This document shows positions 1 through 57,291 of a DNA stretch of 64,000 nt, in pieces. The position numbers and the translations under genes are program-made. This DNA is from Leucoraja erinacea (Eukaryota). Numbering within the stretch: the stretch's first letter is position 1; each line of letters opens with the position of its first letter. The notes under the pieces were generated by a model. It saw only the letters and a program-made list of their open reading frames with translations, had not been told where the DNA came from and did not search any database. The stretch covers positions 8,990,001 to 9,054,000 of the forward strand of contig NC_073415.1 of the NCBI RefSeq assembly GCF_028641065.1, in the 5' to 3' direction.

Positions 1-33
1 ACTCACAGGTGTAATACAACTATTATTATTTGG

Positions 34-275
34 TCAAGTCTGTGAGTTATTGTCATTGCCGTTTGAAATCACTTCCTGCAAAGGAAAAATGTCCAGAGAT
101 TCATTCACACGAGGGATTTCTTGGTTTCTGCTGGGTGTTGGATTCAGTACATTATATTCTCCTGTTTTCCGAGCTCCGTCGATCCGGCAATAGCAGATTA
201 TTGCCATTATTATTATTATTATTGCCCCCACAATTGAAAAGCCCACGATGATGATCACCCATGACGATTCTTCAC
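34..275 (-). CDS. Gene A (ICAM/VCAM-like) last exon: transmembrane helix + cytoplasmic tail
   Basis: cacag| acceptor at 276-277, phase 1; encodes EESSWVIIIVGFSIVGAIIIIIMAIICYCRIDGARKTGEYNVL...SQT, TGA at 34-36; near-identical to 25021-25298. Confidence 0.85.
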
Positions 276-1293
276 CTGTGGATAATTCACAAAAACCATT
301 ACACAATCATCATCCATTCTGAGCAAATACATCTACTGTAAAACTACAGATCCTTTCTTTCCAAAATCCATGAATTTTGCCTGCACTCATTTGCAGGTAT
401 AATTTACTTATAATCTCTCGAATTACTATCTACCTCATCGGGGACCCTCGGACTATCTTTGATCGGACTTTACTGGTTTACCTTGCACTAAACGTTATTC
501 CCTTATCATGTATCATGTATCTGCACACTGTGAACGGCTCGATTGTAATCATGTATTGTCTTTCCACTGGCTGGTTAGTACACAACAAAAGCTTTTCACT
601 GTACCTCAGTTACATGTAACAATAAGCTAAACTAAACCAATGTTTTCTCATTATATTTATAAACACATTGTGCGTACGAATGGCATAGCATGCTACTCGA
701 CGGCCAATTAAATATTTTTTGAAGAATAAAGTCCATTTTCATTTAACTTAGTTTAGCAATTCAGTGCGGAAACAGGGTCTTCGGCCCACTGAGTCCATGC
801 CGACCATCAATAACCCATTTACATTAGTTCAATGTTATCCCACTAACCGGAGATACCAGATAAAACGTACACAGGTCACGGGGAGAATGTACAAACTTTG
901 TACAGACAGCACCCGTAGTCAGAATCGAACCCATGTCTTTGGTGCAGAAACGTGCCCTTTGGCCCACAGAGTCCGCACCGACCAGCGGTTCCTAACACTA
1001 ACAGTATCATACACACACTAGATACAATTTACAATTATACCAAGCCAATTAACCTACAAAACTACGTCTTTGGAGTGTGGGAGGAAACCGGAGATCCCCG
1101 AGAAAACACATGCAGTTTACGGGGGGGGGGGGGGGAGCATGTAAAGCTGCATATAGACAAGCAACCCGTAGACAGGGTCGAACCCGGGTCTCTGGGGCTG
1201 TAAGGCAGCAACTCTACCGCTGCGAAATCATCCCACCTCATTCATGATTGAAAGCCAGAGCAGACTCGATGGCACCAATGTAAAGTTACTTAC

Positions 1294-1578
1294 TTTGCAC
1301 ATTGAGTGTGATATTCTGTTGCTTAACAATGGGTTCAGGGTGATTTTGGAGTGTCAGTTTAGCCACACAAGTCAACTGCTGTCCATTCATCTCCATCTTT
1401 GGATGCAAAGTGTGGTAGATAGTGTGCTCTGTACTGGATGACTCGCTTGGCAAAGACATATTCCCATTCTTCAGTGTAAGTTGAAGTTCTCCCGAGACAT
1501 TAAACACACTGCAGGTAATATTCACCGGTTTTCCATCAATGATGGTCAGTGATGCTTGGATTACAGGTTCGGAGAAAA
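1294..1578 (-). CDS. Gene A Ig domain exon D4
   Basis: ttgcag| acceptor, |gtaagt donor, 285 bp phase 1-1; FSEPVIQ...NITCSV...MNGQQLTCVAKL...TLNVQ with Ig Cys pair. Confidence 0.88.
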
Positions 1579-1649
1579 CTGCAACAACAGAAAGATATTG
1601 TTAGAAACCCTATCAAAGCTTAGAGCAGCACTGTGGCGCGGCGGTAGAT

Positions 1650-2172
1650 TTTAATGTTCAAGTTCAAGTGAGTTTATTGTCATGTGTCCCTGTATAGGAC
1701 AATGAAATTCTTGCTTTGCTTCAGCACACAGAACATAGTAGGCATTTACTACAGAACAGATCAGTGTGTCCATATACCATTATATAAATATATACACACA
1801 TGAATAAATAAACTGATAAAGTGCAAATAACAGAAAATGGGTTATTAATAATCATAGTTTTGTCCTAGCCAGGTTTAATAGCCTGATGGCTGTGGGGAAG
1901 TAGCTATTCCTGAACCTGGTTGTTGCAGTCTTCAGGCTCCTGTACCTTCTACCTGAAGGTAGCAGGGAGATGAGTGTGTGGCCAGGATGGTGTGGGTCTT
2001 TGATGATACTGCCAGCCTTTTTGAGGCAGCGACTGCGATAAATCCCCTCGATGGAAGGAAGGTCAGAGCCGATGATGGACTGGGCAGTGTTTACTACTTT
2101 TTGTAGTCTTTTCCTCTCCAGGGCGCTCAAATTGCTGAACCAAGCCACGATGCAACCGGTCAGCATGCTCTC
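1650..2172 (-). mobile_element. 5'-truncated Rex1/Babar-type LINE fragment nested in a SINE
   Basis: ORF 1852-2166 (...IIKDPHHPGH...[11 protein letters not shown]...FRNSYFP), (cttgaa)n tail; paralog at ~28190-28703. Confidence 0.8.
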
Positions 2173-2544
2173 ACCTTATGTAATTGCCTTATAGTAGTGT
2201 CAAAGACCTAGGTTCGATCTTGACTATGGGTGCTGTCTGTACGGAATTTGTACATTCTCCCCGTGACTTGTGTGGGTTTTCTCCAGGTGCTCCAGTTTCC
2301 TCCCGCACTCCAAAGACGTACAGGTTTGTAGGTTAATTGACTTTAGCTATGGCTCTACATCCAACTGTAGTTGGACAATGATCGGAGGCAATTACCCAAA
2401 GTCACCCTATTATTCCCGGCATCATTCACCCCCTATACCAATCTCATCAAACCTAGTGACATGTTGGTTGAACGCATCCTGATGAGTGGAATTTGAAATG
2501 TCCACAATGTTTGGGCAACACTGGCAAAGTTCCCATTGAACACC

Positions 2545-3092
2545 GGGTGTAGGAAGGAACTGTAGATGCTGGTTCACACCGAAGATAGGCACAAAATGCT
2601 GGATAACTCAGCGGCACAGGCATCATCTCTGGAGAGAAGGAATAGGAGACATTTTGTGTCGAGACCCTTCTTCAGACTGCAAATCAGGGGAGAGGGAGAT
2701 ACAGCGATAAGGAAGGTGTCAAAATGAGACCTGAGACAATATAATAGATGAGGTCATGACAATATCATGACATGAGACAAGATGAGGATCAAGAAAAATG
2801 TAGAATAGATCAGAATGTAGAATAGGAGAAGGTGACCACAAAGCAAACGGAGACAAAATGTCATTGGGGAGACTGGTGGGAGAACTGGGAAGGGGGAGGG
2901 ATGGAGAGAGAGGAAGAGCAAGGGTTACTTGAAGTTAGAGATGTCAATGTTCATACCACTGGGGTGTAATCTGCCCAAGCCAAATATGAGGAGCTGTTCC
3001 TCCAATTTGTGTTGGGCCTCACTGTGACAATGGAGGAGGCCCAGGACAGAAAGGTTGGTGTGGGAATGGGAGGGGATTTATAGTATTTAGCA
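2545..3092 (-). mobile_element. Penelope-like element fragment with its associated terminal repeat
   Basis: Degenerate GIY-YIG-type C-terminal coding remnant at 2925-3090 next to the gaagggtctcgac-type repeat; paralog at 29078-29620, similar at 51115-51600. Confidence 0.5.
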
Positions 3093-3842
3093 TCTCCACC
3101 CTGGCTGGTAACAAGCCAGAGGCTTCTATGTCACTTCAGGGAACTCTTTGCTTTCAAAACAATGGTAAATAGTCCACTGATTTAATTCCTGGGCGTAAGG
3201 AAGGTACTACAATATTTCTCCTTTATGTAAATGTTATGCATATATATTCAGTTTGTATCTCTGATAAATTCAGTTGCCGGTAGCTGCCTCTGTAACAGGA
3301 TCTACATTAAAAACAGACGAAATAAGAGCAGGGCTTTATCACACACTCCAACGAGGCAGCTCTTGAATGAAGAAGGGTCTCGACCCTAAATGCCACCCAT
3401 TCCTTTTATCCAGTAATGCTGCCTGTCCCGCTGGGTTACTCCAGCATTTTGTGTCTATCTTCCATTAATAAGAATGTAGCTGAATCTAGGTGACATCATG
3501 TTGCCTTTTTCCCCCTAATTATTGTGGTTTCTGTACAGGCTGATTAAAGTTTTGTGACTCTCCTATACCAAATGTCCCCATGCAATGGGTGCCCATAGGT
3601 AGAAAGGGATCTTTAACAGTTCCCAGAGGAGGTAGTTGAGGCAGGGACTATCCCAATGTTTAAGATACTAGTTACACAATTACATGGATAGGACAGGTTT
3701 AGATGAATATGGGCCGAACGTGGGCAGGTGGGATGAGTGTAGCTGGGACATGTTGGCCGGAGTGGGAAAGTTGGGCCGAAGCGGTTTCCACGCTGTATGA
3801 CTATGACATCAATCATAATCTCCGGTTATCCAGCATGCTTAC

Positions 3843-3899
3843 TGTACACCTCAATGGAAATGTTGGCACTCCTTGTTAGATTTAATGGATAATCCTCAA
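3843..3899 (-). pseudogene. Remnant (3' ~57 bp plus donor) of gene A D3 exon; acceptor and most of the exon deleted
   Basis: Matches gene B 30356-30412, then jumps to intron sequence equivalent to B ~30659. Confidence 0.85.
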
Positions 3900-4264
3900 C
3901 ACAAGGAATTCATTGCTTATTAGTTTTCTGTAGACAATGGAGCCCACTGAGTCCGCGCCAACTGGCACACTAATGCTATCCTATACACACTAGGGACAAT
4001 TACAATTATCCGAGCCAATCAATCTACAATCCTATATGGCTTTGGAGTGTGGGTGGAAAACGGAGATCCCAGATGAAATCCATGCAGATCATGGGGAGAA
4101 CGTGCAAACTCCATACATTCAGCACCATTAGTCAAGATCGAACTCGGGTCTCGGGCGCTGCAAGGCAGTTGCTCTTTTGCTGTGCTACCGTGCCACACAA
4201 ATCTGTTATTTAAATTGACTTTATTTATACTATAATAGTTGTAATGAGGTGGGGGGGGAGGTTG

Positions 4265-4570
4265 CTTGGCACAGCGGTAGAATTACAGCCTTACAGCGCC
4301 TGAGACTCGGGTTTGATCCTGACTATGTGTGTGGTTTGTACATATTTTGTACGTTCTCCCCATGATCTGCGTGAGTTTTCTCCAGGAGCTCCGTTTTCCT
4401 CCCACACTCCAAAGATGTGCAGGTTTGTAAGTTAATTGGCTTGGTAAAAATTGTAAATCTACCCTAGTGAGTAGGATAATGTTAGTGTGCGGGAATCGCT
4501 GGTCGGCGTGGACTTGGTGGGCCGAAGGGCCTGTCTCCACGCTGTATCACTAAACTAAACTATACTAAAC
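4265..4570 (+). mobile_element. tRNA-derived V-SINE (HE1-like); representative of dozens of copies in the window
   Basis: A/B-box-like head (ggcacagcggtaga...gggtttgatcc), conserved core gttctcccc...ttcctcccacactccaaaga, gggccgaagggcctgt tail, (taaac)n. Confidence 0.8.
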
Positions 4571-4714
4571 AGTGCAGAAACACACATTGTGTTAACGTGT
4601 TCTACAGAGGAAACCTTGCAGACAGGGTAAACTCAACTTAAAGTGCTTGTTCTGTAGATAACTCATCTCTCCTGGTTTAGTGTGTGTGGCTTGCTTGTAA
4701 ATGTGTCAGCAGAC

Positions 4715-5015
4715 AGCACGGTGGCACAGGGATAGAGTTACTGCCTTACAGCACCAAAGACCAGGGATCAATCCTGACTAAGGGTGCTATCTGTACGGAG
4801 TTTGTACATTCTCCCCGTGACCTGTGTGGGTTTTATGCAGGAGCTCTGGCTTCCTCCCACACTTCAAAGACATGCAAGTTTTGCCGGCTAATTGGCGTGC
4901 TACAATTATAAATTGTCCATAGTGTGTAGGATAGTATTGGTGTGGGGGGATCTCTGGTTGGCACAGACCCGGTGGGCCAAATGGCCTGTTTCCACGCTGT
5001 ATATATAAACTAAAC
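4715..5015 (+). mobile_element. V-SINE (HE1-like)
   Basis: Same head, core and tail motifs. Confidence 0.8.
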
Positions 5016-5092
5016 TTTACAAAATGCGACTCCAGTTTGTTTCAACTTAGTCTTGAGCAGAGGAGAGCAATTATTGTTCAAGTGGAACTCAC

Positions 5093-5407
5093 AGTAGGTT
5101 TGCAGAGTCACGGAGGAGGATTCGATTTCTTTTGTGGTATTTGTGACCAAGTCCAGCTCTGCCAAGCATGTGTACACTTGTCCATCCTCAGCCATGCTTG
5201 CATTGAGATTGAGAATATTGACCACCGGAGTCACATCTTCTGGAAACTTTTGTTCCGTTGGGTTAACTGACTTCACAACTTTGCTCCCTCTGAGCCACTT
5301 GAGATGGAGCTTGGTGTTTGGATACACTCTTGGACCGGTGCAATTAAGCTGATATGTTTTGTTAATTTCCATCGCCTTTGGATGTGGTGCAATGACAAGA
5401 TCTCGAT
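5093..5407 (-). CDS. Gene A Ig domain exon D2 (ICAM/VCAM D2-type)
   Basis: caacag| acceptor, |gtgagt donor, 315 bp phase 1-1; YQLNCTGPRVYP..LKWLRG...EDGQVYTCLAELDL. Confidence 0.9.
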
Positions 5408-5546
5408 CTGTTGAAGGAGAATCATGTTAATAAAATTCACTGAAATAATGAACCTGAATAGTATTTGTCCCACCTCATCTCATATTCACCGATTATTCAA
5501 GTGACATACACACAGCATGAATGTACATATGTTCTTCAATATTTAG

Positions 5547-5855
5547 GGTGGCACAGTGGTGCAGTGGTAGAGTTGCTGCCTTACAGCACCATAGACCCAG
5601 GTTTGATCTAGAATACGGGTGCTGTGAATACGGAGTTTGTAAGTTCTCCCCATGACCACATTGGTTTTCTCCAATATCTTTGGTTTCCTCCCACATTTCA
5701 AAGAGGTACAGATTTGGAGGTTAATTGGCTTGGTATAAGTGTAAATTGTCCCGAGTGTGTGTAGGATAGTGATAGTGTGCCGGGATCGCTGGTCCTTATG
5801 TACTTGGTAGGTCGAAGGGCCTGTTTCCGCACTGTACCTCTAAACTGATCTAAAC
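5547..5855 (+). mobile_element. V-SINE (HE1-like)
   Basis: Same head, core and tail motifs. Confidence 0.8.
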
Positions 5856-6895
5856 AAATCTAAATTGTAAGCAAGAACTTAAATGTTCTCTCCCCACAGA
5901 TGCTGGTTGGACTGCTGTGTTTCTAGTATTTCAGATTTAGTTTAATTCAGAGATGCAGCATGGAAACAGGCCCTTCAGTTTACTGACTCCAATCCGACCA
6001 TCAATCACCTGTTCATACGAGTTCCACGTCATCCCACTTTCTCATCCACTCCCTACACAATAATGGCAATTTACAGAGGCCAATTAACCCATCTATTCTA
6101 CATTATTTATTCTACATTTTCCTTGCTCTGCATTCCCTTTGTCCTGTTTTCACACCTTTCACTTCCTTATCTATGTACCTCTCTCTCCCCTGACATCAGT
6201 CTGAAGAAGAGACTCAACCCGAAACATCACCCATTCCTTCTCTGCAGAGATACTGCCTGTTCCGCTGACTTACTCCAGCATTTTGTGTCTATCTTCAGTT
6301 TAAACCAGCATCTGCAGTTCCTTCCTACACATTCAGAGTTTGAGTTTAGTTTATTGTCACGTGTACCAAAGTACAGAGAGAAGCATTTGTTGTGTGCTGA
6401 CTAGTCACCGGGAAGACTATACATGATATTCTGCAATGTTACCTATGTAACTAATTATTTAACATTTTAGAATAAGAGGTTTCGCTTATTATACACTGTG
6501 ATCACAAGTTTTCAAAGCTTTTGGTTTAGTTTAGTTTAGGGAAACAGGCTCTTGAGTCCGTGCCGATCAGTGATCCCTGCACACTAGCACTATCCTACAC
6601 ACACTAGGGACAATTTACAGTTTTACTGACAGTAATTAACCTACAAGCCTGGAGTGTGGGAGGAATCCGGAGCACCCGGAGAAACCCCATGCAGGTTACG
6701 GGGAAAACCTCCAAACTCATAGTCAGGATCAAATCCTCGTCTCTGGCGCTGTAAGGCAGCGACTCTACTGCTGCGCCACTGTGCTGTCCGATTCTGCATA
6801 TTATTCTGCTAGCAAATGGTTATAGAGTGATACAGTGGAAACAGGCCCTTCGGCCCAACTCTCCTATACCGGTTAGAATAAGAAATTACACTTAC

Positions 6896-7171
6896 TGTAC
6901 ACAATGATCACTGTTTTGTTCTCAACCGGAGTATTGCTTACAGATTTGCACAATACACTGCAAACCATTGGTAAATCCCACCTCTTCACAGTTGGGATTT
7001 GGCATGTGATTGAGTTGTTAACGTTATTGCAGTATTTATTTAGCCCTGGTTTTAGTTCCATGGATATAATAGGATCTAAACATGTGGTTCTGCAGGTCAC
7101 ATTCAAAGAGCCCTCGATTTCCACAGCTGGAGTGTCTGTGTTTATCTGAACCTCAAATCCATTCCCTTTAG
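6896..7171 (-). CDS. Gene A N-terminal Ig domain exon D1 (ICAM-type CxxxC...CxxxC)
   Basis: gacag| acceptor, |gtaagt donor, 276 bp; GSLNVTCRTTC...MEL...MVCSVLC...IIVY. Confidence 0.9.
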
Positions 7172-7974
7172 CTGTCAGAGAAAAAGCACAATAAGTACAG
7201 AGATACAGAATCCATTTAAACAAAGGGCAAAATCAAGGTAATTTCTTGATCTAAAAGAGTCATTTCTAATTACTCACAAACCAATAAAATGTTATTTTTC
7301 TACGAATTATATAACTCCAGGAACTGGGAGTCGGTGTTAGAGACTGAGGTGATTCTTAACATTTCCCGGTGTTGAAGTAAAGAATGTTTCTGTTTAGCAA
7401 GTGTTGAATATACAGTAGAATAAAGAGTTTGACAACAGAGAAACGAATGAAGTGATTTTACAAGGCGGAGTTCCATATCAACACTGTACATGCTGTTTTT
7501 TTAAGATAGACACAAAATGCTGGAGTAACCCAGCGAGTCAGGCAGCCTCTCTTGAGAAAAGGAAGAGGTGAAGTTTCGGGTCGAGACCCTTCTGCAGACA
7601 GTCAGGACAAAAGGGAAACGAGAGATTTAGAACAAATGAATGAAAGATATGCAAAAAACGTGACAATGATAAAGGAAACGGGCCATTGTTAATTCAGCGG
7701 CTCAGGCAGCGTGTGTGGAAGGAACAGACAGGCGGGACCCTTCAGGCAAAATGCATTCCAGGCAAACATTTAAATCACAAGAGAATCACATTTAAATCCT
7801 CTGAAAAACATGTTCAAACTTCCTTCCAGATGGAAAGCCGGTGATGTTTCTGACCCGCCGGGGCAGCGGGTCCCCGTTCCCGTGTGGAACAGGCATCACT
7901 GCCGGGGCTGGAGACGAGACCTCCCCCCGTCCGTGATGCTCACTGCCCGGCGGCCCAGAGGCCCCGGTCCACAG

Positions 7975-8345
7975 GTACTCACTCACTTACACTCACTCAC
8001 ACTCATTACTCTCACACGAACATTCACACTCACTCTCTCTTTCACACATCCACACACACACATCCACAAACACTCATAAGCACACCCACACACACCCTCT
8101 CACTCACACACGCACTCACTTACACAAACACACGTGCACTCACACATGCTCTCACAATCACACACACTCACAGTTACACACACATTCATCACTATCACAC
8201 ACGCACACATCTATTCTCTCGCACACTCATATATCCTCACTCACACACACATTCATACACATACACACTCACCCTCACGTACACATTCCACATGCTCGCA
8301 CACTTAAGCACGTGCACACTCACTCTCACACATATACGCACACAC
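7975..8345. repeat. Degenerate (CA)/(CACT) microsatellite in intron 1 (paralog 36340-36650)
   Basis: Low-complexity sequence. Confidence 0.9.
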
Positions 8346-9147
8346 TAGCTGCTCCGGTGCTGGTAATGGCGTGATCACAGAGTCCCTGCGTCCCTCTCCC
8401 ACTGCGTCCCTGCTTCACGCCACCAAAAATAAGCAATCATCTGCTATCGTAGCGTTGTTACAAAACCTACCATCAGCGGCGCTACAAATCTGCCACTGCC
8501 GGCGCGTGCGATTCCGGTGGCTTTGGGGTGGGATTAAAATGCAGGTTTATATTGGTTGTCGGAGAGGGATTTCCTCGGGCTGCTACCTGATGAAGAAAAA
8601 TCGTTCGCGCTTCCGTTCGCGTTTTTAAAAAAAATTGCCGGACGATTGCGACGCAGGATTAATCTTAAATGCGACTAAAACATCTTCAACATTTTAAATA
8701 TATACTAGACCAAGTATAGATCCCCAACGAGGGGGGGGGGGGGGGGTGCTGCGGTTTCACACGCACACAAACCACCCCCCCCACACACACACACACACAC
8801 ATTTGTAGATGGTACTGTGGTTTCTGGAAAGGTGGAGATTTTTGATTCAGGTAAATTTAAAGACTGAAGTTGTTAGGGCAGGAAATATATTGAACTACAA
8901 TTTTGCCTTATTTTGTATCAACATGAATATTCTTCAATATTCTGGAAAATAGACCACATTTGTTTTCAAGGGACCCAAGAATTTGGAAACAAAATCTGTG
9001 GTGTGTTTGACAGAAGATAGGCCAACAGTATATGCCATGGAACACACATGGCCAATACATGTTAACTTGTTCTACTGTAACGATTCTTATTCACTGGATG
9101 AGTAAGGAACACATTTATTTTGTATTACTGTTGCATCCTGGACTCAC

Positions 9148-9330
9148 CGGTGGGTGTAATTGGTGCGGTCATTAAGGTGGTGGTAGCTTCAGTTGAAGAT
9201 GCACTTGTGCTGCCTGCAGTTGTTTCTACTGTCCTTGATGTGGGAACTGATGTGATGCTTGAAGCTGTTGTAGTTGCCTCTGAACTTGTAGATGGTACAG
9301 TGCTTTTTGGTACGGTGATGAATTTTGATT
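9148..9330 (-). CDS. Putative mucin-type (Ser/Thr-rich) cassette exon, 61 codons
   Basis: ttaccag| acceptor, |gtgagt donor, 183 bp phase 1-1; ESKFITVPKSTVPSTSSEATTTASSITSVPTSRTVETTAGSTSASSTEATTTLMTAPITPT. Confidence 0.55.
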
Positions 9331-9624
9331 CTGGTAAATTTAAAGACTGGTGTTATTAGGGCAGAAAATGTATTGAACTACAATTTTGCCTTATTTTTGT
9401 AACAACATGATAATTTTCTTCAAGTTTCTGGAAAATAGACCACATTTGTTTTCAAGGGACCCAAGAATTTGGAAACAAAATCTGTGGTGTGTTTGACAGA
9501 AGATAGGCCAACAGTATATGCCATGGAACACACATGGCCAATACATGTTAACTTGTTCTACTGTAACGATTCTTATTCACTGGATGAGTAAGGAACACAT
9601 TTATTTTGTATTACTCTTGCATAC

Positions 9625-9807
9625 CGGTGGGTGTAATTGGTTCGATCATGAAGGTGGTGGTAGCTTCAGTTGAAGATGCACTTGTGTTGCCTGCAGTTGT
9701 TTCTACTGTCCTTGATGTGGGAACTGATGTGATGCTTGAAGCTGTTGTAGTTGCCTCTGAACTTGTAGATGGTACAGTGCTTTTTGGTACGGTGATGAAT
9801 TTTGATT
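9625..9807 (-). CDS. Putative mucin-type cassette exon
   Basis: AG acceptor, |gtatgc donor, 183 bp, open S/T-rich frame. Confidence 0.5.
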
Positions 9808-10101
9808 CTGGTAAATTTAAAGACTGGTGTTATTAGGGCAGAAAATGTATTGAACTACAATTTTGCCTTATTTTTGTAACAACATGATAATTTTCTTCAA
9901 GTTTCTGGAAAATAGACCACATTTGTTTTCAAGGGACCCAAGAATTTGGAAACAAAATCTGTGGTGTGTTTGACAGAAGATAGGCCAACAGTATATGCCA
10001 TGGAACACACATGGCCAATACATGTTAACTTGTTCTACTGTAACGATTCTTATTCACTGGATGAGTAAGGAACACATTTATTTTGTATTACTCTTGCATA
10101 C

Positions 10102-10284
10102 CGGTGGGTGTAATTGGTTCGATCATGAAGGTGGTGGTAGCTTCAGTTGAAGATGCACTTGTGTTGCCTGCAGTTGTTTCTACTGTCCTTGATGTGGGAA
10201 CTGATGTGATGCTTGAAGCTGTTGTAGTTGCCTCTGAACTTGTAGATGGTACAGTGCTTTTTGGTACGGTGATGAATTTTGATT
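10102..10284 (-). CDS. Putative mucin-type cassette exon
   Basis: AG acceptor, |gtatgc donor, 183 bp, open S/T-rich frame. Confidence 0.5.
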
Positions 10285-10587
10285 CTGGTAAATTTAAAGA
10301 CTGGTGTTATTAGGGCAGAAAATGTATTGAACTACAATTTTGCCTTATTTTTGTAACAACATGATAATTTTCTTCAAGTTTCTGGAAAATAGACCACATT
10401 TGTTTTCAAGGGACCCAAGAATTTGGAAACAAAATCTGTGGTGTGTTTGACAGAAGATAGGCCAACAGTATATGCCATAGAACACACATGGCCAATCCAT
10501 GTTAACTTGTTCTACTGTAATGATTCTTATTCACTGGATGAGTAAGGAACACATTTATTTTGTATTACTGTTGCATCCTGGACTCAC

Positions 10588-10770
10588 CGGTGGGTGTAAT
10601 TGGTGCGGTCATTAAGGTGGTGGTAGCTTCAGTTGAAGATGCACTTGTGCTGCCTGCAGTTGTTTCTACTGTCCTTGATGTGGGAACTGATGTGATGCTT
10701 GAAGCTGTTGTAGTTGCCTCTGAACTTGTAGATGGTACAGTGCTTTTTGGTACGGTGATGAATTTTGATT
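10588..10770 (-). CDS. Putative mucin-type cassette exon
   Basis: AG acceptor, |gtgagt donor, 183 bp, open S/T-rich frame. Confidence 0.55.
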
Positions 10771-11064
10771 CTGGTAAATTTAAAGACTGGTGTTATTAGG
10801 GCAGAAAATGTATTGAACTACAATTTTGCCTTATTTTTGTAACAACATGATAATTTTCTTCAAGTTTCTGGAAAATAGACCACATTTGTTTTCAAGGGAC
10901 CCAAGAATTTGGAAACAAAATCTGTGGTGTGTTTGACAGAAGATAGGCCAACAGTATATGCCATGGAACACACATGGCCAATACATGTTAACTTGTTCTA
11001 CTGTAACGATTCTTATTCACTGGATGAGTAAGGAACACATTTATTTTGTATTACTCTTGCATAC

Positions 11065-11246
11065 CGGTGGTGTAATTGGTTCGATCATGAAGGTTGTGGT
11101 TGCTTCAGTTGAAGATGCACTTGTGTTGCCTGCAGTTGTTTCTACTGTCCTTGATGTGGGAACTGATGTGATGCTTGAAGCTGTTGTAGTTGCCTCTGAA
11201 CTTGTAGATGGTACAGTGCTTTTTGGTACGGTGATGAATTTTGATT
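11065..11246 (-). pseudogene. Mucin-type cassette exon with a 1-bp deletion (182 bp)
   Basis: ccggtggtgt here versus ccggtgggtgt in the other units; would shift the frame if included; could be a sequencing error. Confidence 0.5.
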
Positions 11247-11549
11247 CTGGTAAATTTAAAGACTGGTGTTATTAGGGCAGAAAATGTATTGAACTACAAT
11301 TTTGCCTTATTTTTGTAACAACATGATAATTTTCTTCAAGTTTCTGGAAAATAGACCACATTTGTTTTCAAGGGACCCAAGAATTTGGAAACAAAATCTG
11401 TGGTGTGTTTGACAGAAGATAGGCCAACAGTATATGCCATAGAACACACATGGCCAATCCATGTTAACTTGTTCTACTGTAATGATTCTTATTCACTGGA
11501 TGAGTAAGGAACACATTTATTTTGTATTACTGTTGCATCCTGGACTCAC

Positions 11550-11732
11550 CGGTGGGTGTAATTGGTGCGATCATTAAGGTGGTGGTAGCTTCAGTTGAAG
11601 ATGCACTTGTGCTGCCTGCAGTTGTTTCTACTGTCCTTGATGTGGGAATTGATGTGATGCTTGAAGCTGTTGTAGTTGCCTCTGAACTTGTAGATGGTAC
11701 AGTGCTTTCTGGAAAGATAGAGATTTTTGATT
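11550..11732 (-). CDS. Putative mucin-type cassette exon (first in transcript order, variant start ESKISIFPES)
   Basis: AG acceptor, |gtgagt donor, 183 bp. Confidence 0.5.
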
Positions 11733-12344
11733 CTGGTAAATTTAAAGATTAAATAACCGCAAACGTTTAAAATTGTAAAGAATTTAGTACCGGACAAAAA
11801 CGGGAAGTAACAAACGGGGAAACGCACACGAACATTGCATAAATACACACACATCCAAGATCAGAGTTTTATAAGTATAGAGATTGGTACTGATTAGGGA
11901 TGATCAGCCATGATCACATTGAATGGCGGTGCTGGCTCGAAGGGCCGAATGGCCTACTCCTGCATCCATTGTCTATAAACAATACATTTGAGCTTAGCAT
12001 TAAGGTTAACAGGTGCATTGAGAATAGAATTATAAAATAAAAGGCACATCTGGTATTTCGTACAGGGAAATAATTAAAGGTGTTTGTTATATATACAAGA
12101 CATGTGTTTATAGTGACAAGGTTATAAAATGCCGACGAGGGAGAGGGATTTGGCTGCAGATGTGGCGGGCGGGGCGGTGAACGGGCATCAACAGCTGGAA
12201 TAACGGGCATCACAGCTGGAAATAACGGGTTCCCCCAATGCGCGGTATCGGGGGGGGGGGCGGCATTCAGCATCACATGCACATTAACCACCCCCCACAC
12301 ACACAGGGGGGGAGGGGTGAGAGGGGGTAGGGGGAGACGGGGTG

Positions 12345-12586
12345 NNNNNNNNNNNNNNNNNNNNNNNNNNNNNNNNNNNNNNNNNNNNNNNNNNNNNNNN
12401 NNNNNNNNNNNNNNNNNNNNNNNNNNNNNNNNNNNNNNNNNNNNNNNNNNNNNNNNNNNNNNNNNNNNNNNNNNNNNNNNNNNNNNNNNNNNNNNNNNNN
12501 NNNNNNNNNNNNNNNNNNNNNNNNNNNNNNNNNNNNNNNNNNNNNNNNNNNNNNNNNNNNNNNNNNNNNNNNNNNNNNNNNNNNNN
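12345..12586. other. Assembly gap (242 N)
   Basis: Run of N. Confidence 1.
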
Positions 12587-12899
12587 GACAGCTTTTGTGT
12601 TAAGTCATTGGAAAAGCAATAGGGAACAAGATGCTAATTTCCGAATATGAAAATGGCCATAACATTTTTAATACTGAAGATCTGAAAGTGAATTAGGTAT
12701 CAAATTAAAGTTATTTTTATGCTTTATCTGATGGGATAAATTACATGCTTGATTTTTACATTCCTACTTTTTGTTTGGACATTAATAAATGACAAGATAT
12801 CCCCCCGCTGATTATTGAGCTCCGCTTAATAGCTTGGCCATGAAATAAAAACGCTGCATGCCATGGGAGAATGCCATTTGATATGAGGATTGTACTAAC

Positions 12900-12966
12900 T
12901 TGTTAATGTGAATACGAACAAGACGAGGTGAAGGTATCTCCCGCTTGAAGTGAGTGTAGAGACCAT
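12900..12966 (-). CDS. Gene A exon 1, signal peptide (MVSTLTSSGRYLHLVLFVFTLT)
   Basis: ATG at 12966 (gtcATGG), hydrophobic core, phase-1 donor |gttagt; joins D1 in frame (...TLT-T-KGNG/FEV); same peptide in gene B. Confidence 0.8.
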
Positions 12967-13571
12967 GACTGCGACCCTTGGCGCCTGCTGCCTCTCCGAT
13001 CACCGCCCGTCCAAATGAACACAGCGCTCCCACAGCCCACAAACAAAAATTCTGTAGACCAAAGATTCTAGTATCTTTACTGTACACTGCCCTTAACATC
13101 AGTGGAAGATTCACACTGGCTCTGATAATCAGCGCAATGGGTGTTACTCCCCACCCTTCTCACCCTCGCCTACATTCCGATCATAAAAAAACACCATCGG
13201 CAGTTCCTTGCTTCATAGTACCCTACTCCTCTACTCCTGCCTCATCATAGTAAACCTCCTACATTCCGTTCACTGTAACCCCCTCCCTACCCAGTCTCCC
13301 ATCACAGTAACAACTTCCACCCCCACCACCGCTGTTCCCCATCATAGTTCATACCTTCATAAGTTCTAGGAGCAGAAAAGACCCATCAAGTCTATTCCGC
13401 CAATCAATCTTTGCTGATCTATCTCTCCCTCTCAACCCTATTCTCCTGCCTTCTCCCCATAACCCCTGACACTACTAAAGTATGCAGTAGGGTTTTTATA
13501 ACAAATGTAAATGATTCTGTTTGTGTCTACATGATACCAAGTGTGCTAATTTACAATTCACCATTTTGTAA

Positions 13572-14225
13572 ATCTTCTTTTCGTGTCTTTGAAGCTGGTT
13601 GGTTATATGACTTTCCCATTCCTTTACACAGTCCTTTGCGTTTTTATTGAACACGGCAAGATCCTTTGGGCTGCACTGGTTGGGTAGTAGGGGGCAGACA
13701 AGGCAGTGCTGCATTGTATGGTCCTCTTCTCCACATTCACAGGTGGTTTGGCCAGTTTCATAGCCCCATCTGGCCATGGCAGCTTTTGATCGCCCTGTTC
13801 CTGTTCGCAGGCAGTTGAGCGTCTTCCACTGGACCCATGGTGCTTCTGAGCCTGGAGGGAGGGCTTCAGAAGGAGGGATACCCATGTCAGTAGGAGGGGG
13901 GTCGTCCTCAAGCCTTTTTGTCCATAGTTGGAGTCTGGTTTCTTCCCGTGATGCTATTAGGGGCTGGACATGGCTGAGAAAGCTTCTCCTGGACTTCAGC
14001 CGTTGGGTCGGGGGTACACGTCTGTAGAGGAGGTGGCGTTCATCACTCGTGGCCTTGGTCATCTCTACTCGGCTGGCGACTTCCCGTCTCACATCAGCAG
14101 GGGCAATGCCAGCGAGGAGGTGCAGGTTGTTTATGTTGGTGGGCTTCAAGCAGCCAGTGATTGAGTGGCAGGTGTTATTCAACGCTGGGTCTAGTTTCTT
14201 GGCATGGGATGATCTATCCCAAACT
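13572..14225 (-). mobile_element. 5'-truncated Vingi/Ingi-like LINE (ORF C-terminus with zinc knuckle)
   Basis: ORF 13496-14281: ITGCLKPT...LAGIAP...LNCLRTGTGR...WGY...CECG...TMQHCLVCP; gacacgaaaagaaga 3' tail. Confidence 0.7.
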
Positions 14226-16152
14226 TTACAAATTTGTAAATGACCGAGCCTTAATACTTCCTCTCTATCGGTTGTTCCCACGTTGCTCCTAATTCTATTG
14301 ACGTTTCTGGTCTTTCATTTTGCAGCCCAGGGCATGACCCTTCCACATTCTCCACCGATTCAGGGCTGACACAGTGGTAGAGAAGTTCCTGCAAACCCCT
14401 GCCCACGGCCCGCACCACAGAGTGGTAGTGAGCGGATTCACAGCCTCACTTCTCCCCTCCAGCACACGTTGTATCTGGGCAAACACAGAGACATCGTGAG
14501 TGACTTCCCCTCCAGAGGATGAGAAATGACTGGAAGGTCAGCTCTGGGCCATGGGTATAATTAGCCTGGATAAATAGTCATAGAGGCTTACAGCGTGGAA
14601 ACAGGCCCTTCAGCCCAACTTGCCCACACTGGCCAACATGTCCCATGTACCCTTGTCCCACCTGACTGCGTTTGACCTACAGTATATCCCTCTAAATCTG
14701 TCCTATCCATGTACCTCTTTAAATGTTCCAATAGTCCCTTCCTCAAATATCTCCTCTGGCAGCTCGTTCCATACACCTACCACCCTTTGTGACGGAGACC
14801 CCGGTTTGATACTGACTACGGGTGCTGGTCTGTTTGGTTTGTACGTTCTCGCCCGTCACCCATTCGGTTTCCTCCCACACACCAAAGATGGATAGGTTTG
14901 TATGTTAATTGGCTTGGTATAAATGTACAATTGTCCCTCGTGTGTGGGATAATGTTAATGTGCGGGGATCGCTGGTCGGTGCGGACTCGGTAGGCCGAAG
15001 GGCCTGTTTCCGCACTGTATCTCTCAGCTAAACTACAGTGAACTACAAACTACAAGGCTACAAACCAAGAGTCGGGAAGTCGGTGGAGACTCAATGGCTC
15101 TTTTAAAATGGAGACACAAGGAACTGCAGATGCTGGTTTGTACAAAAAGACACACGGTGCTGGAGTAACTCAGAGGGTCATACATTTTTGGAGAACATGG
15201 ATAGGTGATTTGGATCAGGCTGCTTCTTCGGACTGACAATAATCGAGGCGCTGTTCCATTTATTGAGATGGTTCACTACCATTGTTGTCAGCTGTGAGCA
15301 ACTAACTCTGACATATCTCTTATCCTTACACCAGGAGGAAACAATTGAAGCTACCTCTTACCTGATTCTTCCCACGTGGTGTATTTGATGATCCTCCTGC
15401 CTCCAACATTAGAACCTCTCTCCTAACTGGATGGATAAGACAAGTTTGGAGGGTTACGGGCAAAATGCAGGCAGGTGGGACGAGTGTAGCTGGGATATGT
15501 TGGCCGTGTGTGGGCAAGTTGGGCCGAAGGGCCTGTTTCCACACTGTATCAGTCTATGACTCTAAATCCTTCCTTTAGTGTGGTGACCAGAACTGTATCT
15601 AGTACACCAGCTGTGATACAGATAGGGAACTTGGGATGATGAGACATTAGATGTTTAGTTAAAATGAAAAAAGAAAATGAAAAGGTTCAGGAAGCTGAAA
15701 ACAGACAAGGCCCATAAGGATTACAAATGGCGCAGAAAATAATTTAAGTACTTTGGGTGGCAAGGTAGCACAGCGATAGAGTTGCTGCCTCACAGCGCCA
15801 GAGATCTGGGTTCGATCCTGACTATGGGTGCTGTCTGTGCGGAGTTTGTACGTTCTTCCTGTGACCATGTGGGTTTTCTCCAGGTGCTCTAGTTCCCTCC
15901 CACACTCCAAAGATATGCAAAGACATGCAGGTTTGTAGGTTAATTGGCTTCTCCGAATTATCCCTTTAGTGTGAGATGCATTGAGATAACATACATAAGT
16001 GGGATAACTTGGAACTAGTGTGCCGGTGATCAATGGTGGACTCGATGGGCTGGAGGGCCTATTTCCACATTGTATCGCTAGACTCTAAAGAAACTGGGAG
16101 TTATAAAGAGGCCAATAATAGTTGTAGACAAGTAGGATTAACAAGTATCCCT

Positions 16153-16340: not shown

Positions 16341-17187
16341 CCAGGAGTATCCCAATGCAGAGGGTTGGCAGGGGAAAGGTAGGTTCACTCAAGTACAAAG
16401 GAAGAAATGTACGTGTGGAGCCAGAGGAAGTGGGTGAGGTTATTTAGGAGTACTTTGCATCAGCATTTCACCAAGCAGAAGGATATGGATGATAGTGAGA
16501 TTAGCGTGGGGAATCTTTATAGAGACATGCAGCTTGGAAACATGCCACAGCCTCACAGAGAGACTTCAACTCCATTAGCCAAAAGATATAGTGTGCGGGT
16601 GATCAATGGTCGGCGTGGACTCGATGGGCCAAAGGGCCTATTTCCATGCTGCATCTCCAGTCATACAACATGGAAGCAGGCTCTTTGTCTAACTAATGCA
16701 TGACAACCAAGATGCCCCATCAATGCTAGTCCTATTTGTCCATGTTTGGCACATATTCCACTAAACTTTCCATATTCAGGAACTCATCCAGTATATTTAT
16801 ATTAAGAAAAATATGTTGGGTCTTTTGAAAAACATTAAGGTGGATAAGTTCTTGGAGTCTGATAGGATCTATCCGGTGATTCTGAGGGAAGCAAGTGAGG
16901 AGATTGCTGGGGTCATGACAGAGATGGACAGAGTGCTGGAGTAACTCAGCGGGTCGGGCAGCATGTGTGGAGAACATGGATAGGTGGCGTTTTGAATCAG
17001 GCTCCTTTTATGTCTCGACCTAAAGTATCACCTAGCCATGTTCTCCAGAGATGTTGCCACACCTGTTGAGTTACTCCAGCACTTTGTGTCATGTACATTA
17101 ACCAGCATCTGCAGTTCGTTGTCTCTACACTATGACAGAGATTCTCTGTTTTCTCTTTAGCCACAAAGTGCCAGAAGATTGGGGACT

Positions 17188-17449
17188 GTCACCTATCCAT
17201 GTTCTCCACAGATGCTGCCTGACCCGCTGAGTTACTCCAGCACTCTGTGAAACGTCACCTATCCATGTTCTCCACAGATGCTGCCTGACCCGCTGAGTTA
17301 CTCCAGCACTCTGTGAAATGTCACCTATCCATGTTCTCCACAGATGCTGCCTGACCCGCTGAGTTACTCCAGCACTCTGTGAAATGTCACCTATCCATGT
17401 TCTCCACAGATGCTGCCTGACCCGCTGAGTTACTCCAGCACTCTGTGTC
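17188..17449. repeat. Four tandem 66-bp units derived from the Penelope-associated dispersed repeat
   Basis: Units start at 17188, 17254, 17320, 17386 and are near identical. Confidence 0.95.
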
Positions 17450-18149
17450 AAAACCAAGAATCTTTGAGCCATTTGCAATTACACTGGAAGATAGCCAATG
17501 GCTTTGAATTTAACTGTAAACAGGATCATTTAACAGTCTAAATTATCTTGAATTGAAAGAATGTCATGTTGTTCTGACTGATTTTCATCAAAATGCTTGA
17601 ATGGACTCATTCTTCCCTCTTCAGAAAAATTAAAGATGCAGGAAGATGCAGAGAAGCATTCCCAAATGGGATGTGCAGTAAAAAATATGAGGTCATCCAC
17701 TTTAGAGCACAAAATCTAAAAGGAGGGTATTTTGGGTGTTCACAAGCATGTACATGTCCATGTACACATCACCTTGCAAACACAGCGAACAATTAGGAAG
17801 ACAAATGATTTGTTGCCTTTAATTATGAGAGTATTTGTAAAAAAGTAAAGCAGTTTTGCCTGCACATCTCCACTCCATACCAAGCCAGAGCCGCAGATTA
17901 TTCACACAGGTTCACGTCGATCGTTGCAAGCCTTGTACACTGTAAACAGCTACACAGTGGAATCGGCAGAATCGCTGATCACAACACATCCCCTCCACCC
18001 CCAACAAGCTCAATGCATTGCATGTGTATGAAGGAACTGTAGATGCTGGTTTAAACCAAAGATAAGACACAAAATACTGGAGTAACTCAGTGCTGGACCC
18101 GAAACATCACCTATTCATTTACGCAGAGATGCTGCCTGTCCCACTGGTC

Positions 18150-28116: not shown

Positions 28117-30355
28117 CTGCAACAACAGAAAGATATTGTTAGAAACCCTATCAAAGCTTAGAGCAGCACGGTGGCGCGGCGGTAGATTTTAATGTTCAAT
28201 TTCAAGTGAGTTTTGTGTCCCTGTATAGGACAATTAAATTCTTGCTTTGCTTCAGCACACAGAACATAGTAGGCATTTACTACAGAACAGATCAGTGTGT
28301 CCATATACCATAATATAAATATATACACACATGAATAAATAAACTGATAAAATGCAAATAACAGAAAATGGGTTATTAATAATCATAGTTTTGTCCGAGC
28401 CAGGTTTAATAGCCTGATGGCTGTGGGGAAGTAGCTATTCCTGAACCTGGTTGTTGCAGTCTTCAGGCTCCTGTACCTTCTACCTGAAGGTAGCAGGGAG
28501 ATGAGTGTGTGGCCAGGATGGTGTGGGTCTTTGATGATACTGCCAGCCTTTTTGAGGCAGCGACTGCGATAAATCCCCTCGATGGAAGGAAGGTCAGAGC
28601 CGATGATGGACTGGGCAGTGTTTACTACTTTTTGTAGTCTTTTCCTCTCCAGGGCGCTCAAATTGCTGAACCAAGCCACGATGCAACCGGTCAGCATGCT
28701 CTCACCTTATGTAATTGCCTTATAGTAGTGTCAAAGACCTAGGTTCGATCTTGACTATGGGTGCTGTCTGTACGGAATTTGTACATTCTCCCCGTGACTT
28801 GTGTGGGTTTTCTCCAGGTGCTCCAGTTTCCTCCCGCACTCCAAAGACGTACAGGTTTATAGGTTAATTGACTTTAGCTATGGCTCTACATCCAACTGTA
28901 GTTGGACAATGATCGGAGGCAATTACCCAAAGTCACCCTATTATTCCCGGCATCATTCACCCCCTATACCAATCTCATCAAACCTAGTGACATGTTGGTT
29001 GAACACATCCTGATGAGTGGAATTTGAAATGTCCTCAATGTTTGGGCAACACTGTCAAAGTTCCCATTGAACACCAGTTGTAGGAAGGAACTGTAGATAC
29101 TGGTTCACACCGAAGATAGGCACAAAATGCTGGATAACTCAGCGGCACAGGCATCATCTCTGGAGAGAAGGAATAGGAGACATTTTGTGTCGAGACCCTT
29201 CTTCAGACTGCAAATCAGGGGAGAGGGAGATACAGCGATAAGGAAGGTGTCAAAATGAGACCTGAGACAATATAATAGATGAGGTCATGACAATATCATG
29301 ACATGAGACAAGATGAGGATCAAGAAAAATGTAGAATAGATCAGAATGTAGAATAGGAGAAGGTGACCACAAAGCAAACGGAGACAAAATGTCATTGGGG
29401 AGACTGGTGGGAGAACTGGGAAGGGGGAGGGATGGAGAGAGAGGAAGAGCAAGGGTTACTTGAAGTTAGAGAAGTCAATGTTCATACCACTGGGGTGTAA
29501 TCTGCCCAAGCCAAATATGAGGAACTGTGCCTCCAATTTGTGTTGGGCCTCACTGTGACAATGGAGGAGGCCCAGGACAGAAAGGTTGGTGTGGGAATGG
29601 GAGGGGATTTATAGTATTTAGCATCTCCACCCTGGCTGGTAACAAGCCAGAGGCTTCTATGTCACTTCAGGGAACACTTTGCTTTCAAAACAATGGTAAA
29701 TAGTCCACTGATTTAATTCCTGGGCGTAAGGAAGGTACTACAATATTTCTCCTTTATGTAAATGTTATGCATCTACATTCAGTTTGTATCTCTGATAAAT
29801 TCAGTTGCTGGTAGCTGCCTCTGTAACAGGATCTACATTAAAAACAGACAAAATAAGAGCAGGGCTTTATCACACACTCCAACGAGGCAGCTCTTGAATG
29901 AAGAAGGGTCTCGACCCTAAATGCCACCCATACCTTTTATCCAGAGATGTTGCCTGTCTTGCTTTTGTGTCTATCCTCCATGAGTAAGAATGTGGCCGAA
30001 TAACAGCATCTAGGTGACATCATGTTGCCTTTTTTCCACTAATTCCTTTGTTTTCCGTACAGGCCGATTAAAGTTTTGTGACTCTCCAGTACCAAATGTC
30101 CCCTTTAATATTCTTTAATAGTTGCCAAAGGAGGTAGTTGAGGCAGGGACTATCCCAACATTTAAGAAACTAGTTACACAGTTACATGGATAGGACAGGT
30201 TTAGAGGAATATGAGCCAAACGTGGGCAGGTGGGACAAGTGTAGCTCGAACATGTTGGCCGGAGTGGGAAAGTTAGGCCGAAGGGCTTGTTTCCACGCTG
30301 TATGACTATGACTCTATGATATCAATCATAATCTCTGGTTATCCAGCATGCTTAC

Positions 30356-30649
30356 CGTACACCTCAATGGAAATGTTGGCACTCCTTGTTAGATTTAATG
30401 GATAATCCTCAAAATCTGCTCTGCAGGTGAATTCAGTCAGTCCTGTGTCTTGTGGTGTCCATGTTGTTGTTGCCCAGATATCGTGGGATGATGACGTCTT
30501 TGTAACTGGCTTCAGTTCTTCTTCATTGTGAAACCATGTTACAGTCAACTTCTCAGCTGGATAGACATTTTGGACCTCACATTCCAACGTGGCCTCCTCA
30601 TTCACTTCAATGGGCTTTCTGTTGAGGATTCTAGGAGGCTTTGGAAAAG
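30356..30649 (-). CDS. Gene B Ig exon D3
   Basis: ttttcag| acceptor, |gtaagc donor, 294 bp; FPKPPRI...ATLECEVQNVYPAEKLTVTWF...EFTCRADF...IEVY. Confidence 0.9.
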
Positions 30650-34080: not shown

Positions 34081-34356
34081 TGTACACAATGATCACTGTT
34101 TTGTTCTCAACTGTAGTATTGTTTTCAGATTTGCACAATACACTGCAAACCATTGGTAAATCCCACCTCATCACAGCTGGGAATTGGCATGTGTTTGAGT
34201 TGTTAACTTTATTGCAGTATTTATCTAGCCCTGGTTTTAGTTCCATGTTTATGTCAGGATTTAAACATGTGGTTCTGCAGTTCACATTCAAAGAGCCCCC
34301 GAATTCCACAGCTGGAGTGTCTGTGTTTATGTGAACCTCAAATCCATTCCCTTTCG
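34081..34356 (-). CDS. Gene B N-terminal Ig exon D1 (ICAM-type)
   Basis: AG/GT, 276 bp; VEFGGSLNVNCRTTC...INMEL...CSVLC. Confidence 0.9.
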
Positions 34357-34489
34357 CTGTCAGAGAAAAAACAAAACATCACAATAAGTAGAGATACAAA
34401 ATGCATTTAAACAAAGGGCAAAATCAGGGTAATTGCTTGATCTAAAAGAGTCATTTCAAATTACTCACAAACCATTAACATACATTACA

Positions 34490-36879: not shown

Positions 36880-36946
36880 TTGTTAACGTGAATACGAACA
36901 AGACGAGGTGAAGGTATCTCCCGCTTGAAGTGAGTGTAGAGACCAT
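36880..36946 (-). CDS. Gene B exon 1, signal peptide
   Basis: ATG at 36946, 67 bp, |gttagt donor; the six exons sum to 1515 nt = 504 aa + stop. Confidence 0.85.
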
Positions 36947-37055
36947 GACTGCGACCCTCCTCGGCGCCTGCTGCCTCTCCGATCACCGCCCGTCCAAATG
37001 AACACAGCGCTCCCACAGTCCACACACTCGCTGTTAATGCAAACAATCTCTCTGA

Positions 37056-57127: not shown

Positions 57128-57291
57128 CTATCCGCTGAGCACCTGTGGATTGTTGTGAGGCTTTGCATTCCGTAGTTTGTATTCTTGTGATTTCTGAGCC
57201 TTTTGGTACAAGTAATAAATAACAGCCCCACTTGCAAAGGTTGCTGTGGCCAGTGCCATTACACTTACTCCTATGATGATCGCCGATTTAT
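57128..57291 (-). CDS. Gene C last exon: TM + ICAM-1-like tail
   Basis: ctacag| acceptor, phase 1; DKSAIIIGVSVMALATATFASGAVIYYLYQKAQKSQEYKLRNAKPHNNPQVLSG, TAG at 57128-57130 (not in the supplied ORF track). Confidence 0.85.

Follow-up and report, generated by a model that had tools for sequence, protein, structure and literature searches.

In MAdCAM-1, immunoglobulin (Ig) domains of the ICAM/VCAM type are found together with O-glycosylated Ser/Thr-rich tandem repeats in one membrane protein. In the CD34/podocalyxin family an N-terminal mucin domain is followed by a globular domain, a stalk and a transmembrane (TM) segment. Classical exon shuffling uses symmetrical phase 1-1 modules in extracellular proteins, which are then duplicated in tandem. 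Here we analyze a stretch of 64,000 nucleotides from the little skate Leucoraja erinacea (RefSeq assembly GCF_028641065.1, contig NC_073415.1, positions 8,990,001 to 9,054,000 of the forward strand), below called the window and numbered from its first letter, in which intron 1 of an ICAM-like gene, gene A, carries a tandem array of mucin-type exons. Two further processes bear comparison. In "mucinization," as summarized in PMC9417175, non-mucin proteins gain repeats rich in proline, threonine and serine (PTS repeats), which are exonic and variable in copy number. Helitrons begin with 5'-TC and end with CTRR-3', carry a short palindrome ahead of the 3' end and enter between A and T without duplicating the target site, the 3' flank being rich in A and T; in Helraiser the palindrome measures 19 bp and lies 11 nt from the 3' end (PMC4778049).

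The window contains three ICAM-like genes (A, B and C), all on the minus strand. When the window is compared with itself, genes A and B align collinearly at 95-97% identity, bar a few indels, and they are a recently duplicated ICAM-like pair in the little skate. The exon of the N-terminal domain (D1) of gene A matches the Pfam family ICAM_N (PF03921) at 21.6 bits (cut-off 21). The RefSeq protein of gene B, P0004, scores 26.4 bits, and for the domain within P0003, the full-length protein of gene A, the score is 17.3 bits, under the cut-off. The nearest solved relatives are ICAM-2 (8e-12), ICAM-5 (4e-7) and ICAM-1 (7e-6), with VCAM-1 being weaker. As in the ICAM family, the product is an Ig-domain protein of the type I membrane kind with a TM exon. 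The signal peptide of gene A (Table 1) also heads P0004.

Gene A is set apart from its sister by a segment in intron 1, 8446-12763, which BLASTN of the window against itself finds in gene A only. On both sides of the segment the two genes correspond again (A 12764-13044 to B 36744-37027 at 93.7%, A 8321-8445 to B 36623-36748). The insertion of about 4.3 kb relative to gene B proposed by the first-pass annotation, which was made from the sequence alone, is thus borne out, and its size is a minimum since the segment contains a gap of 242 N (12345-12586). The whole segment is a mosaic including at least three other repeat fragments (Table 1). An Rfam scan of 8000-13200 gave no match.

Within the segment, Tandem Repeats Finder (TRF) reports an array at 8803-11748 with a period of 477, 6.1 copies and 96% matches, and a repeat finder gives spacings of 477 and 486. 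Units of type a measure 486 bp and have the donor GTGAGT, units of type b measure 477 bp and have the donor GTATGC. All six cassettes follow ...tttaccag, precede one of these donors and are stop-free in the frame giving SK(F/I)...STVPSTSSEATTT...PITPT. Ser and Thr make up 50-53% of the cassettes and there are 5 Pro per 60 residues, which qualifies the six repeats as mucin (PTS) sequence. The six AG...GT-bounded cassettes with about half Ser/Thr, five of them 183 bp long, are therefore as originally described, and the sixth (cassette 2) has 182 bp. Cassette 3 has the same sequence as cassette 6, and cassette 4 the same as cassette 5, so that the six open frames amount to one observation and are not independent coding evidence. 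Identity extends to the introns (1 = 3; 2 = 4 = 5). The interior copies are 100% identical, the edge units match the remainder of the array at 93-95%, and of the seventh unit 45 nt are left, ended by a (GT)n run. The higher-order a/b pattern, the identical interior copies and the more diverged edge units show that the array grew in place by recent unequal crossing-over, which homogenised the interior and left the edges more diverged.

The acceptor has shifted within the array. In units 2-6 the inner acceptor ccAG is now ccAA and the outer AG, 24 nt upstream, is the only AG left. Use of the outer acceptor adds the residues SKFITVPK and extends the exon from 159 to 183 nt with the phase unchanged.

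Exon 1 of gene A contributes 67 coding nt and hence has a phase-1 donor, D1 starts at 7171 in phase 1, and a cassette of 183 nt (3x61) is phase 1-1 on both sides. The phases were derived from exon lengths and public proteins, the exons being searched one by one, and the start of D1 in phase 1 is confirmed by P0003 (...PITPT-A-KGNGF) and P0004 (...FTLT-T-KGNGF). Exon lengths and public proteins thus agree with the first arithmetic, by which the five 183-bp cassettes are in phase with both the donor of the signal exon and the acceptor of D1. RefSeq in fact models a mucin-Ig chimera at gene A, as LOC129714544 of Leucoraja erinacea. XP_055520209.1 ("zonadhesin-like isoform X1") has 563 aa, and its cluster mate XP_055520210.1 ("uncharacterized protein LOC129714544 isoform X2") has 502 aa. 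By tblastn the Ig and TM parts of these proteins fall on the exons of gene A at 98-100%. Isoform X1 begins with M-TAPITPT, the end of cassette 3, continues through cassettes 4, 5 and 6 and then reads A-KGNGF... (D1-D2-D4-TM); isoform X2 is isoform X1 minus one cassette, with cassettes 4-5 joined to D1-D2-D4-TM. The variation in cassette number which had been predicted is therefore present in the models, as the two isoforms differ by exactly one cassette. We found no paper mentioning the LOC129714544 chimera; it is already public as an annotated RefSeq model, yet undescribed.

Where do the cassettes come from? One cassette (60 aa) was queried against 1.84 billion representative proteins and gave only two matches. 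The first is the RefSeq protein of the gene A locus itself, the second is XP_032902718.1, a mucin-16-like protein of 3584 aa from the thorny skate Amblyraja radiata, with five stretches matched at E 4e-15. In L. erinacea the corresponding protein is P0007, with 4482 aa and 30 SEA domains, and its gene is on a different record (31.1 Mb) from gene A (12.3 Mb). Both skate mucin-16-like proteins have 53-residue repeats ahead of their SEA array. The cassette has a core of 53 aa, which aligns gap-free and in register with these N-terminal repeats at 60-64% identity, and the z of 13-15 over residue shuffles indicates a likeness beyond shared composition. Furthermore, 53 aa correspond to 159 nt, which is the cassette length from the inner acceptor (tctttccAG|AAAG...) kept in units 1 and 7. 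We conclude that the cassettes descend from MUC16-type PTS exons. The protein search and the gap-free alignments over 53 aa have thereby led to the donor mucin family which the first-pass annotation wanted to locate. A domain search found no SEA domain at the gene A locus, and only the PTS repeat is held in common with a MUC16-type mucin. The locus is accordingly a relative of one MUC16 module and not a member of the MUC16-type mucins.

For RNA evidence four runs were mapped on 7100-13000. Run X2 is a 50-Mb contig set, which we guess to be RNA, run X10 is a 1.8-Gb contig set of DNA size, and runs X15 (oligo-dT) and X19 are raw RNA-seq runs, of each of which 5-6% was read. A contig of run X2 with 213 nt matches 9169-9330 without difference and departs from the genome exactly at the outer acceptor at 9330, from where 48 further letters run off the intron sequence. 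The 20 nt upstream of the outer-acceptor AG are conserved in all units, which makes a DNA variant breaking at the acceptor base unlikely, and splicing at the outer acceptor 9330 is the simplest reading. Run X15 places bases equal to about 13 reads on the bins with cassette exons, and the three bins of intron alone (8873-9069, 10843-11039, 11237-11433) receive about none; this contrast is weak, given some 13 reads, multi-mapping and intronic reads elsewhere. Gene-B-type reads on exon 1 and D1 are marked by 12907C, 7114C, 7118A and 7146G. In run X19 the reads on exon 1 and D1 are all of the gene-B type and there are no cassette reads. Reads of the gene-A type at exon 1 and D1 occur in run X15 alone; they are a minority there, and their depth of about 1.5 is close to the value of about 1.8 for each cassette. 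There are also reads with variant combinations (9168, 11649) which are absent from the assembled array. Taken together, RNA support for the chimera is thin.

We suggest, with moderate confidence, that the locus represents exon shuffling and tandem amplification caught at an early stage, with mucin PTS exons having come to lie in intron 1 of gene A by whatever vehicle. The following steps can be envisaged. A piece of genomic DNA with mucin-type exons and their introns would have joined intron 1 of gene A (LOC129714544). Then the array enlarged in place by unequal crossing-over, and the outer AG replaced the lost inner acceptor, by which the exon grew from 159 to 183 nt. The phase 1-1 cassettes could be spliced between the signal peptide and D1. 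This would place an O-glycosylated stalk of up to about 300-360 residues, adjustable in steps of 61 residues, before the ligand-binding D1. Such a stalk might mask D1 or present glycans. We infer the transfer at the DNA level, an in-frame protein with a signal peptide and any function of it.

Several observations weigh against this proposal, and some of them suit an unlikely alternative, namely that the array is a silent passenger: a dead fragment of a mucin gene sitting in the intron, with gene A, if active, splicing exon 1 directly to D1, the RefSeq models being prediction artefacts to which the long open cassettes gave rise and the RNA stemming from a real mucin gene or from pre-mRNA. Cassette 2 is frameshifted by its length of 182 bp, and both RefSeq proteins begin at the internal Met of cassette 3 without a signal peptide. 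Such a start would be expected under a longest-open-reading-frame rule for an mRNA that includes the frameshifted cassette 2. No joints from exon 1 to a cassette, from cassette to cassette or from a cassette to D1 are among the best 15 of 68 joints, which are mostly interspersed repeats. Run X15 covers the unique intron stretch 7297-7493 at a depth of 1.5, similar to that of the cassettes, so pre-mRNA may make part of the cassette signal. The summed depth of run X10 on the array is 450-1100, far over six times the unique depth (5-15); it is not a copy number, and it hints at near-identical units elsewhere or at an array collapsed in the assembly. With such possible extra units the cassette RNA is not assignable to gene A with certainty. 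The public run assemblies contain no short cassette-bearing open reading frames (41-127 aa covered), and among mucin-Ig proteins of 310-985 aa none was found in other species, only this locus. The annotated MUC16-like repeats are too unlike the cassettes (60-64% identity) to be their direct recent source. At the junction in gene B (AAAAAG|CAGATG), all that matches the ends of the A-specific segment is a microhomology of 2 nt, AG, and both a gain of the segment by A and its loss from B would fit. The silent passenger is further favored by the missing D3 exon of gene A, by the 18 non-synonymous against 3 synonymous changes which separate its D1 from that of gene B, and by the gene-B-like transcripts (P0004-P0006) which join the signal straight to D1.

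A mere passenger, however, does not readily account for two RefSeq isoforms which differ by exactly one cassette, nor for the run X2 contig, as it ends exactly at the outer acceptor found only in the derived unit type. Cassette reads and gene-A-type reads co-occur at similar depth in run X15 and are both absent in run X19, and the remaining exons of gene A are intact. Of the chimera signal-(mucin)n-D1-D2-D4-TM put forward at the outset, the part from the cassettes to D1-D2-D4-TM exists as gene models, the RefSeq isoforms X1 and X2, and the full protein with signal peptide is unproven in view of the 182-bp cassette 2, the internal Met start and the missing junction reads.

As vehicle, a Helitron had been proposed, more precisely a non-autonomous element (11883 to 8705, minus strand) with captured mucin exons which inserted between A and T in A-specific intron sequence. 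We hold this to be rather doubtful. The claimed ends are literally there, A|TCTCTATACTT at 11884/11883 (TC 11883-11882) and CTAG|T at 8708-8705/8704, there is no target-site duplication and the 3' flank is AT-rich. However, TC and CTRR are low-information motifs, and neither end has a second copy in the 64-kb window. The 5' TC lies 2-3 nt from a true breakpoint (about 11886) where a high-copy repeat stops, with no homology further, some 130 nt inside the 5' end look multi-copy (run X10 depth 14304 at 11848), and the cargo retains its introns, as with capture at the DNA level. The supposed GC hairpin before the CTAG does fold, as a G-run/C-run stem-loop of 47 nt at 8736-8782 (-20.4 kcal/mol, z -4.3), but it consists of a G8/C15 low-complexity motif which ends 27 nt from the CTAG, compared with 11 nt in Helraiser. 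Moreover, it belongs to a motif of about 70 nt which recurs at 12250-12305 (hairpin motif 12273-12295) beside the gap, with no CTRR after it, and the two copies stop matching at TTGGGGA, 16 nt before the CTAG. An empty site is not available, as gene B is also without the flanks of 8705-11883. The whole segment 8446-12763 is not in an AT site, so at least two events would be needed, and a direct repeat, ATCT(CT)ATACTT at 11884-11872 and 8721-8711, flanks the array and offers a rival boundary. We found no papers naming both Helitron and Leucoraja. Delivery by a Helitron is not supported in the form in which it was stated.

The motif of about 70 nt, composed of (GT)n, G-run, inner hairpin, C-run and TTGGGG, is present twice, at 12250-12305 and 8734-8789, 3516 bp apart and in the same orientation, and both copies fold as long stem-loops. 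It may represent a transposon end, a scar of recombination or low-complexity sequence that is prone to sequencing trouble. The high-copy repeat is an abundant interspersed one with fragments at 11886-11976, 7503-7599, 6199-6295, 35558-35616, 37714-37784, 49748-49804, 58787-58849 and 63929-63979. Its summed depth is in the millions in DNA contigs and it is heavy in RNA-seq. DNA contigs join 11890 straight to 7599, so these two fragments are neighboring parts of the consensus of the repeat family. A continuation of this repeat into the putative Helitron 5' end, where TCTCTATAC resembled the repeat's TCTCTCCATAC, was rejected, the local alignment scoring under shuffles.

We regard as improbable the far-reaching version of our proposal, by which a DNA-level vehicle (Helitron-type or other) carried mucin-16-type exons between chromosomes into a fresh ICAM-like duplicate and the skate makes ICAMs with graded N-terminal mucin stalks by cassette splicing and array-length polymorphism. 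That the array was misplaced or misbuilt by scaffolding over the gap 12345-12586 is hardly credible: the gap with its low-complexity edge lies 460 bp upstream of the array, the interior units are 100% identical and the depth hints at more units than assembled, but the array and D1 to TM are on one gap-free stretch (1-12344) and a DNA contig of run X10 at unique depth spans 8134-8478, over the 8445/8446 junction, without difference, with the reservation that X10 may be the assembly's own sample.

Table 1. Features of gene A, its intron 1 and the neighboring gene B (window positions)
Feature	Position	Strand	Remarks
Coding part of exon 1, gene A	12900..12966	-	67 nt, from ATG at 12966 to base 12900; encodes signal peptide MVSTLTSSGRYLHLVLFVFTLT; phase-1 donor A|GTTAGT
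A-specific sequence adjoining exon 1	12587..12763		very high-copy repeat, absent from B; run X10 summed depth about 4e5 vs 5-15 in unique flanks
Assembly gap (N run)	12345..12586		242 N
First copy of (GT)n / G-run / C-run motif	12250..12305	-	directly beside gap
Very high-copy interspersed repeat fragment	11886..11976		broken off at about 11886; other copies in window; thousands of loose ends at 11886 and 11898
Stretch between putative 5' TC end and first array unit	11756..11883	-	outside repeat unit; looks multi-copy; run X10 depth 14304 at 11848
Tandem array of exon+intron units	8803..11748	-	units a b a b b a + truncated seventh (type a 486 bp, type b 477 bp)
Cassette 1	11550..11732	-	183 bp, phase 1-1; inner acceptor tctttccAG kept 24 nt downstream, giving 159 bp = 53 codons
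Cassette 2	11065..11246	-	182 bp; one C missing in CACC-ACCG, eight bases from end; frameshift
Cassette 3	10588..10770	-	183 bp; its sole Met is the start of both RefSeq proteins
Cassette 4	10102..10284	-	183 bp; identical to cassette 5
Cassette 5	9625..9807	-	183 bp; identical to cassette 4
Cassette 6	9148..9330	-	183 bp; identical to cassette 3; in RefSeq isoform X1, skipped in isoform X2
Truncated seventh unit	8803..8847	-	outer AG now TG, inner ccAG kept; reads (E)TTVPSTN, MUC16-like
(GT)n, then second copy of G-run/C-run stem-loop motif	8721..8802	-	the "GC hairpin" of the first-pass annotation
TCTATACTTGGTCTAG, putative 3' CTAG end	8705..8720	-	contains a 9-11-nt echo of the 5' end TCTCTATACTT
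A-specific tail	8446..8704		8479-8621 is another repeat family; run X10 depth 6803, loose ends at 8621
D1 exon, gene A (ICAM N-terminal domain)	6891..7171	-	phase-1 acceptor
D2 exon, gene A	5094..5408	-	Pfam scan; tblastn of RefSeq proteins
D4-type Ig exon, gene A	1289..1576	-	Pfam scan; tblastn of RefSeq proteins
Transmembrane + cytoplasmic exon, gene A	37..273	-	tblastn of RefSeq proteins
Gene B exons	exon 1 ~36946-36878; D1 ~34378; D2 32581; D3 30680-30342; D4 28114; TM 25296	-	

The gene pair shows some further differences. Gene A lacks an equivalent of the D3 Ig exon found in gene B (30342-30680); the alignment of the two genes skips from A 3899 to A 3945 over about 420 bp of B (30342-30834). 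The RefSeq protein of gene B, P0004 (406 aa), is without D3 although gene B has the exon. In D1 (A 6891-7175 vs B 34076-34360) the 18 non-synonymous and 3 synonymous differences correspond to a pN/pS of about 1.6, and D4 is nearly identical between A and B. The D1 differences point to diversification or to relaxed constraint on the presumed ligand-binding domain. The dN/dS of A versus B rests on few changes and on a TM block misaligned by an indel, and we draw no conclusion from it. Gene C (57131-63340, minus strand), the third ICAM-like gene, has its D1 at 63340 and differs in a longer D2 region plus an I-set-like domain. Its first exon is beyond the window, so that intron 1 of gene C is of no use for deciding between gain and loss. 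An identical open frame of 107 aa (GESMLTGCIVAWFSNLSALERKRLQKVV...) is located in the same intron of A and B (1855-2175 and 28386-28706, minus strand); it matches no Pfam family and probably belongs to a retroelement. Just upstream of exon 1 of gene A, an open frame of 272 aa (13499-14314, minus strand) resembles the C-terminal part of a retrotransposon open reading frame. Finally, a tandem repeat of about 66 bp at 17128-17478 (minus strand) gives an open frame with four SQSAGVTQRVRQHLWRTWIGD copies.

Textbook exon shuffling has mostly been deduced from old, eroded events. In gene A the imported module has kept its introns, the family it came from is recognizable, and a sister gene without the array is available at 95-97% identity. 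The array is still being amplified, and the locus adds a young new case to a known process. A chimera, if produced, would be an ICAM whose mucin domain precedes the ligand-binding domain; to our knowledge, no such vertebrate ICAM has been described. It would then offer a natural test of the effect of a glycan stalk on an integrin ligand. If in addition the transposon reading were true, one would have a case of exon shuffling with the vehicle still recognizable and the product in use. In sum, the observation of the cassettes is confirmed, the chimera is partly supported and a Helitron element is not established.

How does gene A compare with the known systems? In MAdCAM-1 the mucin region comes after the Ig domains, near the membrane, whereas in the gene A chimera it would come before D1 and each repeat is an exon of its own; also, MAdCAM-1 is not among the solved relatives at E<0.01, which include ICAM-2, -5 and -1. 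The layout is similar to that of the CD34/podocalyxin family, but there is no sequence relation and the globular domain is a different one. With the skate mucin-16-like proteins gene A shares the 53-residue repeat and the motif order E-TTVPS..S.E....ASS.TS.PTS.T.ETT.GSTSAS.TEATTT. It differs from them by an identity of 60-64%, by having no SEA domains and by its location on another record, and the interior units have gained 8 residues from the shifted acceptor. Helitron capture (Helibat/Helraiser and maize Helitrons; PMC4778049) likewise moves exon-intron DNA into genes and yields chimeric transcripts, with TC...CTAG ends at A|T; for the gene A segment, in contrast, the family, the empty site and a canonical subterminal palindrome are not established. 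As in mucinization as described in PMC9417175, a non-mucin protein would gain copy-number-variable, densely Ser/Thr-rich repeats; in difference to that description, gene A received ready-made mucin exons, which were amplified as exon-intron units. The closest parallel is classical exon shuffling, as a phase 1-1 module lies in a phase-1 intron of an Ig-superfamily gene and was then duplicated in tandem. In principle the two are the same, and gene A represents a young, lineage-specific case whose intron copies still retain 93-100% identity.

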